Positions 669 through 61,920 of a stretch of DNA of 64,000 bases are shown here, piece after piece. The notes below the pieces were generated by a model. That model saw only the letters and a list, made by a program, of their open reading frames with translations. It searched no databases and was not told where the DNA came from. The translations under genes and the position numbers were made by a program. Each line of letters starts with the position of its first letter. The stretch's first letter is position 1. The DNA comes from Hemiscyllium ocellatum. Lineage: Eukaryota. The stretch is taken from NCBI RefSeq assembly GCF_020745735.1, contig NC_083433.1, positions 6,397,363 to 6,461,362 of the forward strand, given 5' to 3'.

Positions 669-3146
669 TCAGCTCAGGGTGAGCCTGTCAAACAGGTACT
701 CTCCCAGGCCATTCTCAGGGGCTCCCAGTCTCTTCAGGTTGGTGATGTGATCTCCCAGCTTCTTGATCATCTTCACTTGCTCATCCAAGTAGTGCCTCTC
801 CAGGAAGTCACACAGCTGGAAGAGATTAAAATTTAGTCAAGAAGGTCATCAAAAACACCAGATCAGAAAGTGACCTCCCATGACAGATGTGATCATCACT
901 GCCATGTTGGGGATGAGGGAGAGGTGCACTCAGGGGATGCCTTTGAAATTTGTAGTTTTAAACAGCCTGCAGAAGGCAGGATGATAATTGGATTTTCCCC
1001 TCTAGGGAATACACAAAGATCATTTTCCTCCACATAGAAAAACTCACATGAGGGTCAGTGTGGCCAGAGGAGAGTTTGTGCAGATCCAGCAGACTCTGGT
1101 TCACATCCTTCTCCATCTGCAGAGCTCTCTGCATTGCCTCCAGACCATTGCCCCACTCATCCTGCTCTGGCTTCTGGAGGAAGGGAAGAGGCAGATATTT
1201 CACTCAATGAAATGTGAGCCAAAACAATGGAATAAGGTAAAGTTAACCATATAATATTACCCCTTGGGAAAGAATGCCTCAAATATTTAGTACTGTTAAT
1301 TGTAATGTAGGATAGACTAACCTTGACATCCTGCAGGAGTACTCGGCCTCCACGTTTATTCTGGAATTCCATCAGTTTCTCAGCGTGTTCCCGTTCCTCG
1401 TGGGACTGCTCCTTGAAGAACTCAGCAAAGTGACGCAGGGCAACATCATCCCGGTCAAAGTAAGAGGACTGCAATCAAGGACAAAAATCATTGCTGCCAA
1501 CATGAAGTCTCAATTCCAGAGGAGGAAACAATATATAAATAAAAATATAAATAAACTGACTCTAATCAGGTGAATTATTTGCAAAGTGTCATTATAGCAC
1601 AAAGTGATCCAATTATCCATGCCAGCCAATTTTACCCAAGCTAAACTAGTCCCAGTTGCTTGGGTTTGAACCCTATCCCTCTAAGCCTTTATTCATGTCC
1701 AAAGGGGTGTTAGATGTTGTAGCTGTACCTGCAGCTACAACTTCCTCTGGTTGAGGATTCTGACCATAAACCCCCACTGAAAATTGTCCTCCAGCTTTTT
1801 CAAGTCCCTCAAGCATATCCCTCCTAGTTTTGGCCTCACTGACAAGATATTTTGCATGTTCACCCTACCCATGCTGTTAGTGATTAAGCCTCTTCAAGGT
1901 CATCCTCCACCTTCTCTTTAGGAAGGCAAACCCTCCAATCCTGTGCACACAGTCTCTTCAATTTAATATCATTCTTATAGGTGTTTAGCCAGAATTGGAA
2001 TTGTTTGAGGAGGGGCTTCACCAACATACTATTGGAATCTCAACATGACATCCCAACTCTATACTCAAAGTAAAGAAGGCAAACAATGCTAAACCACTCC
2101 TTAACCACCCTTACATACCTATGACAAAACCTTCCAAGGAATTATGGACCGGAATCTTTAGGTCTCAATTCTACAATACTACCCAGCACCCTACCATTAT
2201 TCATAATAGTCTTGCCCTGGTTTAAAGGACAAGACCTCACATCCAAATTAAATTCCATCTACCACTTCACCCCAACTGAGAAAATTGATCCAGATCTTTG
2301 TAATCCAAGATAATCTTCAAAATCCACCAAGTCACCCATTGTATGGCATCCACAAACTTAGTAAACATGCCTCAAGTCATTTTAGGAGTGACAAGATTAG
2401 GCCCAGAACCATTCCCTGCACAACATGACTGGCCACAGGCCTGCAGTGCCAAAAGTAACAATACAAGATTGGCTTGATTGGAGCCAGTTAGCAAGCTTCC
2501 TGAATCCCACATGATCTACTTCACTAAATTAGTCTACATGCAGAACCTATGGGTTGAAATTCCTTCCTTGTGAATGAGGAAAGGAAGAGGGATACTTAAA
2601 TTCAAGCTAAAACATTCAGGAAACTTCTTGTCACTTATGGCCATTTGGAAACAACACCCAGCCTCAGTAAGGGAATCTTTCAACCCAAAACAGGCCTCTC
2701 CACTCAATTTGCAACAAGTTAACTGGTTAAGCACAGTCAGGTATTAGGGTTCAGGGTAATACTAAGAGGGGCCCAGGTTAGTGTTCCATATGCTCTAGAG
2801 ATAGGTCAATATATCTGGAGATGTTGATTAGGTTGTTTATTTAGGATAGTGAATCCAATTAAATTGAGCAGACAAACTATTTTCCGGTCACATCAATAAT
2901 ACTAGACAGCAGCTGATTAGCAAGACCTTCTGTAAGATAAAACAAATACTCCCTTCTAAACATCATAAATTGACTGCAGAGAAATACTATATCTTCAATA
3001 TAATATAGCTGCAGCTTTAATTCTGAAATAAACACAAGCCTCACCATGGAGAGGTAAACATAGGAGGAATAGAGCTCCAGGTTGATCTGCTTGTTAACAG
3101 CAGCCTCACAGTCCTTGTGATAGTTCTGACATACTTGGGAGGCCAT
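669..3146 (-). CDS. Ferritin H/M-type subunit, copy A (173 aa, 4 exons)
   Basis: Exons 3146-3045, 1468-1322, 1173-1048 and 815-669 with GT-AG phase-0 introns. Spliced: [173 protein letters not shown]. Ferroxidase ligands (human H E27, Y34, E61, E62, H65, E107, Q141) are present. An extra in-frame ATG lies at 3149. Confidence 0.95.
1596..2620 (-). mobile_element. CR1-type LINE 3' fragment (decayed)
   Basis: Reverse-complement similarity to the CR1 copy at 36710-37830. Confidence 0.7.
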
Positions 3147-3210
3147 CATCACTCTTTCCACACACTATCACCTAGATAACTGTAGAACTAAACCTCTCTC
3201 CCACAAGCTC

Positions 3211-3360
3211 TTGTATTTATCCTCCTTGGCCATCCTGCACTCAACTCGGGAGCGGCATCGCCAATGATGATTGACAATCCCTAATAGCCAATCATGAATC
3301 TCCATGAATCCAGGCACGGAAGAACAGAGAGCAGAGACTGAGACCGAGAGCCAATCAGAG
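3211..3360 (-). promoter_or_regulatory. Ferritin A promoter: GATAAATA TATA-like box plus clustered CCAAT/Y-boxes
   Basis: GGATAAATAC about 70 nt upstream of the ATG, a CCAATGATGATTG element and two AGCCAATCA boxes. The layout is conserved across copies. Confidence 0.7.
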
Positions 3361-58931: not shown

Positions 58932-59635
58932 ACCTATACAAGGTATTTGCCAAAAACGGATACCCGCGCAACTTTATCAACAGATGCCTAAGAGATAGAC
59001 CACGGAACGTGGACATGCCACAACCAAAAGGACTAGCCACACTACCATACATCAGGAGCGTTTCAGAACTGACAGCCAGACTACTGCGACCCTTAGGACT
59101 CATAACGGCACACAAACCAACAGCCACGCTCAGACAACTCACTAGAACAAAGGAGCCGATACCCAACATGAGCAAAACTAATGTAGTTTACAAAATACCA
59201 TGCAAGGACTGCACAAAACACTATATAGGACAAACAGGAAGACAGCTAACAATCCGCATACATGAACATCAACTAGCCACGAAATGACACGGCCAGCTAT
59301 CCCTAGTAGCCACACACAGACAACAAGCAACATGAATTCGACTGGAAAAACACTACTATCATAGGGCAAGCCAGACAGAGAACAGCCAGGGAATTCCTAG
59401 AGGCATGGCATTCATCCACAAACTCCATCAAACACATCGACCAGGACCCAATATACCAACCACTACAGCGGACAGCTGAAACTGACACCCGGAAGCGGCA
59501 AGGACAGACCACTATAAAGACCAGACGAAACATCAAAGAAGCGCTTCGCAGGAGGCTCCAGAGCACTGATGATGTCTCCTAGCCAGGGGATGAAACGTTT
59601 GCAACAAAAACTTCCAGCTCGACGAACAGAACCAC
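58932..59635 (+). mobile_element. Penelope-like element, 5'-truncated (GIY-YIG endonuclease plus tail)
   Basis: LPYIRSVSE...VVYKIPCKDCTKHYIGQTGRQLTIRIHEH, flanked by the direct repeat AACACATGCAT (58921-58931 and 59636-59646). Confidence 0.9.
59563..59602 (+). ncRNA. Minimal type I hammerhead ribozyme motif in the Penelope tail
   Basis: GCA-CTGATGA-T-GTCTCCT(AGCC)AGGGGAT-GAAAC-GTT-TGC: core boxes, stem II, palindromic ACGT stem III and a 3-bp stem I. Confidence 0.72.
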
Positions 59636-60252
59636 AACACATGCATCATTTCAGGACAGCAGTCCATTCTTTCTGCTTTGCCACATGCTCAGAGGGCATC
59701 ATCCTTGAATGTAGAGTGCAGGAAGTTGTTTAATAATAAATATAAACTTGCATTTACATCTAAGGCCACAGATTTCATTCCCAATGACATTATCTGTTTC
59801 ACCAATATGGTGTTTAATATTTGACAGCTTCAGCTATTTATCTACAATGATTAAAAACCCCATGAGACAGCTGTTGTATGTTGCTGCAATTTTCATTAAG
59901 ATGACACTCAGGAGGATGATTAACCACCAAAGTCTAAAGGAGGACAAGAAACTCCAGAAGAATGTTTAAACAGGCTGTTGTGGTGCAGTGGTAGTGTCCC
60001 TTCCCTGATACAAGACCTACCTGCTCCACATGTGTAACGATGTCTGAAAAGGGTGATTAAGAAAAATAGTTCAAAGCAAGTTAAAGGTCTCACATGTCAT
60101 GCAGCTAAGAACCATGGATATGAAAGCAATCATTGAATTTTATAAAAAAGGTGTTTTGTCATTCACAGATTTTATTTTCAAGTTCAATGAGAATTCACAA
60201 TTTAGTACTATACATTAGAATAATTGCATATTGCAGTTTGACAGAGTCTCAC

Positions 60253-61920
60253 TCAGCTCAGGGTGAGCCTGTCAAACAGGTACTCTCCCAGGCCATTCTC
60301 AGGGGCTCCCAGTCTCTTCAGGTTGGTGATGTGATCTCCCAGCTTCTTGATCATCTTCACTTGCTCATCCAAGTAGTGCCTCTCCAGGAAGTCACACAGC
60401 TGGAAGGGAAAGAGGGGAACTGATTAGGTCAAGATCAAATACACCTTTTCTTCCTCAAGAATTAAATTCCGATTGATACAGGGAGTAGGCAATTAAGTGA
60501 TGTCACAGATTGCTGACAAGCCTCCAGAAAGTGCTCAGATTTTGGCAACACCAGTATGTCAGTCAACCCCTGCGATGGAGGGAGAGATTGAGACTAAAGA
60601 GCAAAGTATCTTACCTATTTAAAGAAGCTAGAAGCACAGGTTAGAAATACCAAGAACTCACATGAGGGTCAGTGTGGCCAGAGGAGAGTTTGTGCAGATC
60701 CAGCAGACTCTGGTTCACATCCTTCTCCATCTGCAGAGCTCTCTGCATTGCCTCCAGACCATTGCCCCACTCATCCTGCTCTGGCTTCTGGGAGGAGAGA
60801 GAGAGAGAAAAAGGATAGGGGCTTCTACAGTTGCATTCGAGACACTAAAATTTAGAGAACTGTGGTATCAGAGTTAATGTAATAAACCGTAGATACAGAT
60901 ATGAAGCATTTTAATTCTCAGAATTACTGTCCATCTACAATAAACACCAAACCTTGACATCCTGCAGGAGGACCCGGCCTCCACGTTTATTCTGGAATTC
61001 CATCAGTTTCTCAGCGTGTTCCCGTTCCTCATGGGACTGCTCCTTGAAGAACTCAGCAAAGTGACGCAGGGCAACATCATCCCGGTCAAAGTAAGAGGAC
61101 TTGGGGGGAGATAGATGAAGAAAGAAAAGACCAAGTTAGGACAGACATATCCAAGAGGGGCAAACATCTCATCGCTCATTTTCTACCTGCCAAATTAGAG
61201 ATATTTCATAGTTAGACAGTATTGGCCTAGTAGCATCTTTAAGCAAGAAAGTTTGACCATAATTGGAAAGGCCATCCCGGTGAGTGCCTGACCAGGTTAG
61301 GAAATGGTATGGGTTAGAAATCCAGAGACAGCAATAATATTTGCTGTAACCTATTCAGCATAAAATCTCATTCGAGAACTCTTCCCTCTTTATTAGGATC
61401 ACATCAAAAGGGGAGTGAAGAATCTGCTAAACAGTAATGCAACAGATGGAATTACTGCTTCCTTGAAAAAAAAAAGCAGTCTCCACATTTACATTTCATT
61501 TCCCCCCATCCTAACAAGGAGTAAGCCATCTAATTACATTCTGTTTTACCATTAAAGACTAGGAAGTTGACTGCACATATTCATTCAGATCATTTGTGTT
61601 CTCCACTGGAACAAGCAGAAATTTCAGATTTAAGCATTTCTGAACAGAGCATAATAGCTGCAGAGTAGAGGTAAGACTGTTCTCAGCTATTTTCAATACA
61701 TTTACTCAAGGGAGGGGACAGAACTACACTCTGAACTACAGGTCACTGACCAAGCAACTACCTGCTACAATTGAATAATAATTACTTAAAAATAGGACCT
61801 AAAAAATACAAGCCTCACCATGGACAGGTAAACATAGGAGGAATAGAGCTCCAGGTTGATCTGCTTGTTAACAGCATCCTCACAGTCCTTGTGGTAGTTC
61901 TGACACACTTGGGAGGACAT
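60253..61920 (-). CDS. Ferritin H/M-type subunit, copy J (173 aa)
   Basis: Exons 61920-61819 (MSSQ), 61099-60953, 60787-60662 and 60399-60253 with intact splice sites. Confidence 0.94.

Follow-up and report, generated by a model that had tools for sequence, protein, structure and literature searches.

We analysed a window of 64,000 nucleotides from the shark Hemiscyllium ocellatum (contig NC_083433.1, positions 6,397,363 to 6,461,362), which holds part of a tandem array of ferritin genes. The coding sequences of the gene copies are almost identical at all codon positions, while most of their introns can no longer be aligned with each other. Our results support short-tract exchange among the copies within the coding exons. 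The explanation that we consider probable is DNA-templated short-tract conversion among the coding segments of an old array of H-type ferritin genes lacking an iron-responsive element (IRE), combined with purifying selection at the level of the array.

Homogeneous coding segments and exchange among copies

We compared the copies of the window, lettered A to J, with those in 256 kb around it, a set with 33 complete copies and the names g01-g36, in which A to J correspond to g07 to g16. A preliminary description of this DNA had reported that exon 3 (126 nt) is identical in copies A, G, H and J, and this holds letter for letter; A, H, I and J likewise have one and the same exon 4 coding sequence (CDS). 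The remaining exon pairs of the window differ at 0-15 bases, and mean coding identity across the array is ~97.5% (33 complete copies). The few differences do not spare silent positions, again as described earlier: nucleotide diversity (pi) is 0.020, 0.021 and 0.034 at codon positions 1, 2 and 3, respectively.

The introns show the opposite picture. When introns of the same position are compared by BLASTN in the window, 91 of 100 pairs have no match at E<=1e-3, and the few that align are 65-79% identical. The claim that many intron pairs are unalignable also extends to the 33 complete copies, where 471 (intron 1), 476 (intron 2) and 472 (intron 3) of the 528 pairs are unmatched, that is, 89-90% for each intron. 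Short introns free of repeats (130-370 nt) are just as unalignable. Intron 1 of copy A has no alignable paralogue in the genome, and introns 2 and 3 of G are related to those of I at 69-72%.

The transition between the two regimes is abrupt. In splice-anchored comparisons, mean pairwise identity is 0.95-1.00 in the exons and reaches the random level (0.26-0.32) within 10-15 nt of their ends, in agreement with the earlier report of a loss close to the splice sites; beyond these sites, the splice consensus and the polypyrimidine tract are all that is kept. Within exon 4, similarity stops 10-30 nt past the stop codon, and the remaining 110-150 nt of the 3' untranslated region (3'UTR) fall into divergent, copy-specific families. 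The homogenisation had been described as exon-restricted, which is correct for the boundaries at splice sites but not for the exon as the unit, because similarity also ends inside exon 4: what is homogeneous is the coding sequence rather than the whole exon or transcript. On the upstream side (3147-3260 in copy A and the corresponding stretch before each exon 1), the short 5'UTR and ~100 nt of promoter are conserved in most copies, with a gradual decay to the random level by about -100.

The comparison of synonymous divergence (dS) with intron divergence (K), proposed in the preliminary description, gives a mean dS of 0.049 in the window, with a ratio of non-synonymous to synonymous divergence (dN/dS) of 0.43, against a K of roughly 0.3-0.45 for the alignable window introns. 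Over broader comparisons, dS is 0.05-0.06 with a dN/dS of 0.3-0.4, and the dN/dS values of all comparisons span 0.3-1.0. The similar diversity at all codon positions, together with these dN/dS values, indicates that the homogenising force is blind to codon position. Exon divergence is, moreover, flat with respect to the divergence of the surrounding introns: the exon p-distance is 2.0% for copies with introns at least 90% identical, 2.6% for both the 80-90% and the 60-80% classes and 2.5% where introns are unalignable. Nor is there a correlation between exon divergence and physical distance (rho 0.07).

Recent duplicates reveal where the exon differences come from. Among six recent duplicate pairs, both alleles are found in other copies at 37 of 57 exon differences, compared with 7% expected under new mutation (p ~1e-28). 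In the youngest pair, g02/g03, intron identity is 98.7-99.8%, but 4 of the 102 positions of exon 1 differ, three of them by alleles of other copies. The flanks around this exon are free of differences over 926 nt and 160 nt, which bounds one tract in exon 1 of g02/g03 at 40 to ~110 nt. We considered whether the tract crosses into the intron and dropped this idea: in a comparison with all copies, one of the two adjacent intron differences occurs in g02 alone and the other is not informative.

Across the array, linkage disequilibrium (LD) has dropped to ~1/n at distances above roughly 10 nt, and all four gametes occur at ~45% of site pairs, from which it follows that the tracts are short and the events many. 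The dinucleotide haplotype at cds 365-366, for example, occurs in ~8 copies belonging to different intron families. Most variable exon sites are singletons, and copy-specific exon variants are retained. The short-tract gene conversion put forward in the preliminary description is thus supported by the flat exon divergence, the borrowed alleles, the g02/g03 tract and the rapid decay of LD. GENECONV is known to lose power under frequent exchange (PMC3924837), so the alleles shared with other copies served as the test. GC-biased conversion is unsupported, as weak-to-strong variants are not at higher copy number than strong-to-weak ones (p=0.63); G+C content at third codon positions is 0.68, against 0.41 in introns.

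Homogeneity does not depend on the state of the gene. Copies carrying nonsense mutations (H, g33, g36) and fragments C and D are as near to the consensus as intact genes, with 6 differences in 414 nt for C, 2 in 141 nt for D and 5 in 516 nt for H. The noncoding parts, in turn, are mosaic: the families of the 5' flank, introns 1-3 and 3'UTR disagree along single genes, and in copy I, intron 1 and 3'UTR have their relatives in J, and intron 3 has its relative in G.

Two pieces further along the array depart from the consensus. A lone exon-1 relic, g31, at the orientation switch of the array (C111:6563717-6563818, C111 being the contig of the window) is 87% identical to the consensus and has the look of a piece that is no longer homogenised. 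In exon 2 of g32, a 23-nt micro-inversion (C111:6568342-6568364) gives rise to a cluster of mismatches at 19 of 141 scored sites, in a copy that is otherwise consensus-like.

Positional orthologues in other sharks

We used independent assemblies of Chiloscyllium punctatum, the whale shark (Rhincodon) and Heptranchias as outgroups, and all of them present the same pattern of conserved exons and diverged introns. In concordance with the prediction of the preliminary description, introns cluster by position across species. Copy A intron 1 is ~93% identical to contigs of a related species. The C. punctatum copy Cp2 matches its H. ocellatum counterpart HoR at 91% in intron 2 and 90.5% in the 3' flank, and copy B is the positional orthologue of the whale-shark copy Rt2, with introns 1 and 3 aligning over their full length at 72-78%. 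This positional match of the introns places the origin of the copies before those splits.

Each of the last two pairs has had one intron swapped for unrelated sequence (intron 3 of HoR/Cp2, intron 2 of B/Rt2), with orthology preserved in the noncoding parts next to it. This noncoding reassortment, like that within the array, calls for genomic DNA partners with breakpoints in exons.

The exons, on the other hand, retain hardly any trace of orthology. The private exon variants of copy B are absent from Rt2, and the dS between B and Rt2 (0.077) is about equal to that between B and its own paralogues (0.063). Exons that are orthologous by intron position are no closer than those of random paralogues, and the mean exon distance is 2.7% between Hemiscyllium and Chiloscyllium, compared to 2.5% within the array. 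The CDS tree is a star, in which Chiloscyllium copies are nested among those of Hemiscyllium, whale-shark copies are basal and Heptranchias copies form a clade. Exons had been expected to cluster by species; this fails for Chiloscyllium, whose copies are unseparated, is weakly upheld for the whale shark (one fixed site and a weak branch with support of 86/73) and is upheld for Heptranchias (100/100), a species for which positional orthology could not be demonstrated. The fixed site, cds 484, is C in all 31 H. ocellatum copies scored and in the two scorable C. punctatum copies, and A in all whale-shark and Heptranchias copies, including Rt2. As copy B carries C and Rt2 carries A, the change has spread array-wide across old paralogues. 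The exon consensus is otherwise almost unchanged among Hemiscyllium, Chiloscyllium and the whale shark.

Mechanism and alternative explanations

Based on these results, we propose that the coding segments swap patches of tens of bp, up to ~110 bp at most, through DNA-templated ectopic gene conversion, and that occasional crossovers or longer conversions would end in exons. The heteroduplex would begin and end in the coding exons, presumably the sole stretches still similar enough to pair, and each coding exon would form an island of concerted evolution. Introns, intergenic DNA and the 3'UTR would have passed the exchange threshold and would evolve independently. Private mutations in one copy would be nearly neutral because the copies are redundant, and would be erased by the next conversion; such erasure would hold every pair of copies at the flat plateau of ~2.5%. 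The consensus would stay nearly static through purifying selection that acts on the whole array. Non-crossover conversion as the mechanism, homology as the limit of the tracts and selection as the force that holds the consensus are what we infer from the exchange of alleles, the coding-only boundaries, the reassortment of noncoding parts and the positional orthology of introns described above.

The preliminary description had suggested that spliced mRNA or cDNA templates the conversion in a germline setting rich in reverse transcriptase, and its premise is sound: we find at least 20 dispersed, intron-less, processed ferritin retrocopies with poly(A) tails, so that germline cDNA exists. Such loci lie at C8:25437180-25437707 (L024), C19:35314223-35314738 (L025), C50:7705711-7706088 (L026) and C8:73662068-73662448 (L027), with ~18 more. 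Their 3'UTRs reveal the parent array copy (g24-, g23-, g18- and g15-like), their 5' ends place the transcription start ~30-45 nt upstream of the ATG, and L024 matches the full protein (1-176, 95%) in an open frame with a single stop, taken as the natural one. Reverse-transcribed transcripts that patch chromosomal exons would also agree with the very sharp boundaries at splice sites, and short tracts inside one exon would leave the introns in place, so that patches of this kind keep a small probability. As the main donor, cDNA nevertheless seems to us very improbable. The retrocopies carry the divergent 3'UTRs followed by poly(A), which means that these regions lie in the mRNA, and yet homogeneity ends shortly after the stop codon. 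All 99 introns of the 33 complete copies are still in place, and the outgroup copies also keep theirs, so the intron loss that had been named as a signature of cDNA is absent; GT..AG ends are present throughout the 33 copies, save for the acceptors of g03 intron 3 and g33 intron 1 (CC and CT), which stand beside small indels. LD is not higher across exon-exon junctions than within an exon at matched cDNA distance, a comparison that says little about the donor because LD is already ~1/n at every distance above roughly 10 nt. Whole introns and flanks have been swapped among copies, for which genomic donors are needed. Reverse transcription was likewise rejected for the same pattern in KRTAP1 genes (10.1101/282418). 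With an unhomogenised 3'UTR and no intron loss, cDNA templating is left unsupported.

Selection alone, with the exons including their silent sites kept since ancient duplications and zero exchange, would fit the near-unchanged consensus in three genera, the predominance of singletons among variable sites and the silent sites that are 3-4 times slower than orthologous introns in comparisons between species, where conversion cannot act. We regard it as very unlikely all the same. It is at odds with the near-equal diversity at the three codon positions and the dN/dS of 0.3-1.0, with the excess of alleles common to unrelated copies among the differences of recent duplicates, with an exon 1 in g02/g03 that is more diverged than the introns of the pair and with nonsense-bearing or truncated copies that are as conserved as intact ones; on population-genetic grounds, selection on a silent change in a single copy would be negligible when more than 55 copies are redundant. 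An artefact of assembly or polishing, in which cross-mapped reads homogenised the repeated exons in the consensus, is conceivable in that the exons are the only parts where reads of different copies could cross-map and that an unplaced duplicate contig (C1925) shows the region to be hard to assemble. We give it hardly any credence, because the exon-intron junctions of copy A recur with 0-1 differences in short-read contigs of X1 and X2, two independent samples of another study, the pattern is repeated in the independent assemblies of the three outgroups and copy-specific exon variants survive. An equally slim prospect is a recent burst of duplication followed by fast scrambling of the introns through transposon insertion, indels or local hypermutation. 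Intron lengths vary widely and the long introns carry repeats, as at the depth spike at 1601-1782, but repeat-free introns of 130-370 nt are equally unalignable, and positional intron orthologues at 91-93% in another genus and 72-78% in the whale shark indicate copies that predate the species splits.

Several points weigh against conversion with array-level selection as we propose it, or limit its reach. Between positional orthologues of H. ocellatum and Chiloscyllium, dS is 0.029 and intron K 0.09-0.10; between B and the whale-shark Rt2, dS is 0.077 and intron K 0.27-0.35. Silent sites are thus 3-4 times slower than orthologous introns between species, measured against a neutral yardstick that consists of the array's own noncoding DNA only. 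Unbiased conversion cannot reduce divergence between species, so that a further force on silent sites is needed. The exons of H. ocellatum and Chiloscyllium are unseparated in the tree, and each outgroup species contributes only 3-4 copies, some of them degenerate; arithmetic of net divergence with the whale-shark copies is weak, as some of those on the scaffold sampled are degenerate. The higher diversity near exon ends that would be expected of DNA tracts bounded by homology is a trend only (0.044 vs ~0.025; circular-shift p=0.13).

Conversion is therefore not the whole explanation of the array pattern, and a directional force that, with a dN/dS of 0.4-1.0, is nearly blind to codon position must act on the coding sequence. 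The retrocopies point the same way: their 3'UTRs differ from the parental UTR ~2-3.5x as much as their CDS differs from the consensus (counted by eye on alignments), a ratio that a static array CDS, with neutral DNA changing on both sides, would produce. Provisionally, we attribute the slowdown to purifying selection on the array consensus together with some constraint on silent sites. An unlikely, though not negligible, alternative is a directional, codon-blind correction, for instance through a choice of donors that favours the commonest sequence and makes rare variants recipients more often than donors or, less likely, through cDNA from pooled transcripts as the patch template, which would have held the consensus of more than 55 copies near-frozen, with its silent sites, since before the split of Hemiscylliidae and the whale shark, despite the turnover of the adjacent introns. 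If this were true, the array would be a self-proofreading unit, with a silent rate several-fold below neutral in the absence of codon-level selection. The slow divergence of silent sites between species is what merits further study.

DNA-templated conversion that is confined to coding sequence is a process already known, of which the shark array is a clean and large example with introns, scale and cross-genus positional orthologues. In the ruminant stomach lysozyme, Drosophila Amy and vertebrate globin genes, exons are homogenised within species and introns and flanks are orthologous; these families have fewer copies and their introns can usually still be aligned, unlike those of the shark array. 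In yeast, the Fink and Derr-Strathern model describes cDNA-mediated recombination and intron loss. The shark ferritins resemble that model in that, as the retrocopies demonstrate, an abundant germline transcript is reverse transcribed, but differ from it in having no intron loss and a homogenised block that falls short of the whole transcript.

A close parallel to coding-only concerted evolution in tandem genes is found in the KRTAP1 keratin-associated repeats of mammals, in which coding regions evolve in concert and flanks radiate normally, a pattern ascribed to short-tract gene conversion and selection after reverse transcription had been considered (Zhou et al., bioRxiv 10.1101/282418). In contrast to KRTAP1, the shark CDS is split by three introns, which gives four islands per gene in more than 33 copies, and the shark consensus barely differs between genera. 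Paralogues from the yeast whole-genome duplication also keep their coding regions in concert where noncoding homology is hard to detect, which has been explained by purifying selection that keeps coding similarity high enough for continued conversion (Fawcett and Innan 2011, PMC3924837). The yeast families have two dispersed copies each and belong to a unicellular organism, whereas the shark array is a vertebrate tandem array of dozens of copies.

We found no description of this shark array in the literature searched, in which a ferritin array of more than 55 copies free of control by the IRE and iron regulatory proteins appears undescribed. The array offers vertebrate islands of concerted evolution, four per gene and in dozens of copies, with boundaries sharp to ~10 nt, and the positional orthologues in other sharks allow the copies to be dated. 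It could thus serve to estimate, in a vertebrate that evolves slowly, how often ectopic conversion occurs, how long its tracts are and how much homology it requires. The array also carries a caution, in that coding sequence misleads the dating of shark ferritin duplications, because the tree of the exons is a star, yet by their introns the copies predate genus and family splits.

Array layout and neighbouring features

The window has a G+C content of ~42% and contains a four-exon gene repeated in ten units, each on the minus strand: eight full ferritin genes and two fragments, C and D (Table 1). The CDS exons of the window copies measure 102/147/126/147 nt and are separated by GT..AG introns. 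They encode an H-type ferritin of 173-176 aa, whose best protein matches are 'ferritin heavy chain-like' proteins of bamboo sharks; close relatives (98% and 91% identity) match Pfam PF00210 at 1e-40 and 2e-32. The ferroxidase-centre residues E27, Y34, E61, E62, H65, E107 and Q141 are present in the translation of copy A, in human FTH1 numbering. With Rfam, no IRE match reaches the gathering score anywhere in the window, and none appears in the 5' region of copy A even at E<=10.

Table 1 Ferritin gene copies and assembly gap in the window (exons listed from 1 to 4 unless stated).
Feature	Span	Exons	Strand	Remarks
Copy A (g07)	669..3146	3045-3146, 1322-1468, 1048-1173, 669-815	-	intact
Copy B (g08)	6405..9141	9040-9141, 8117-8263, 7810-7935, 6405-6551	-	intact, most diverged
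Fragment C (g09)	9945..10638	10492-10638, 10239-10364, 9945-10091	-	exons 2-4 only
Fragment D (g10)	11622..11768		-	lone exon 4
Copy E (g11)	14810..17404	17303-17404, 15427-15573, 15170-15295, 14810-14956	-	intact, alternative C-terminus
Copy F (g12)	21838..25667	25566-25667, 22833-22979, 22235-22360, 21838-21984	-	intact, alternative C-terminus
Copy G (g13)	28174..30561	30460-30561, 28976-29122, 28690-28815, 28174-28320	-	intact
Copy H (g14)	35126..39626	39525-39626, 38074-38220, 35413-35538, 35126-35272	-	disabled
Copy I (g15)	42459..44211	44110-44211, 43272-43418, 42973-43098, 42459-42605	-	intact
Assembly gap (158 N)	58239..58396			intergenic, between I and J
Copy J (g16)	60253..61920	61819-61920, 60953-61099, 60662-60787, 60253-60399	-	intact

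In copy H, exon 2 carries an in-frame TGA (codon 76) that disables the gene. Fragment C has neither exon 1 nor promoter and carries the alternative C-terminus LGESD*, with a CDS that extends a few nt below 9945. We rejected the possibility that copy F is a pseudogene, as its exon 2 lies at 22833-22979 with a sound acceptor AG and frame. The long intron 3 of copy B measures 1258 nt. In intron 1 of copy A, positions 1601-1782 show a very high depth of read contigs in every run, with many loose ends, which indicates an interspersed repeat.

The C-terminal classes sit in blocks of the array: A, B and G-J end in ...TLS*, whereas C-F and g18 onward read through to ...LGESD* or ...LGEE*. The whale-shark and Heptranchias copies have the second form.

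Beyond the window, the array extends over ~6.35-6.73 Mb of the contig, with at least 55 exon-2 matches (at least 90% identity), and its orientation changes from minus to plus near 6.56 Mb, in a head-to-head flip at C111 ~6,560,260-6,563,720. Copies g20, g21, g23 and g24 pair with g36, g35, g34 and g33, respectively, on the opposite arm, with introns 87-98% identical, which indicates an inverted segmental duplication of a multi-gene block. A second ferritin array, entirely on the minus strand, lies at C111:12650843-12944123, with ~35 exon-2 matches and 71-81% amino-acid identity. The unplaced contig C1925 (~151 kb) mirrors C111:6.44-6.58 Mb gene for gene with equal spacing and is probably the other haplotype.

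The assembly gap lies ~1.86 kb 3' of the last exon of J and ~14 kb from I, outside every exon and intron compared. By coordinates only, the exon-2 spacing from I to J is 17,681 nt on the contig of the window and 17,678 nt on C1925. Also between I and J, two direct repeats of 300 nt, 100% identical and 9.3 kb apart (47060-47359 and 56408-56707), flank a G+C-rich stretch; the pair looks like a young long terminal repeat (LTR) provirus inserted in the array. Near the 3' end of this provirus-like stretch, at 55734-56147, is a 46-nt tandem repeat of ~7-9 units.

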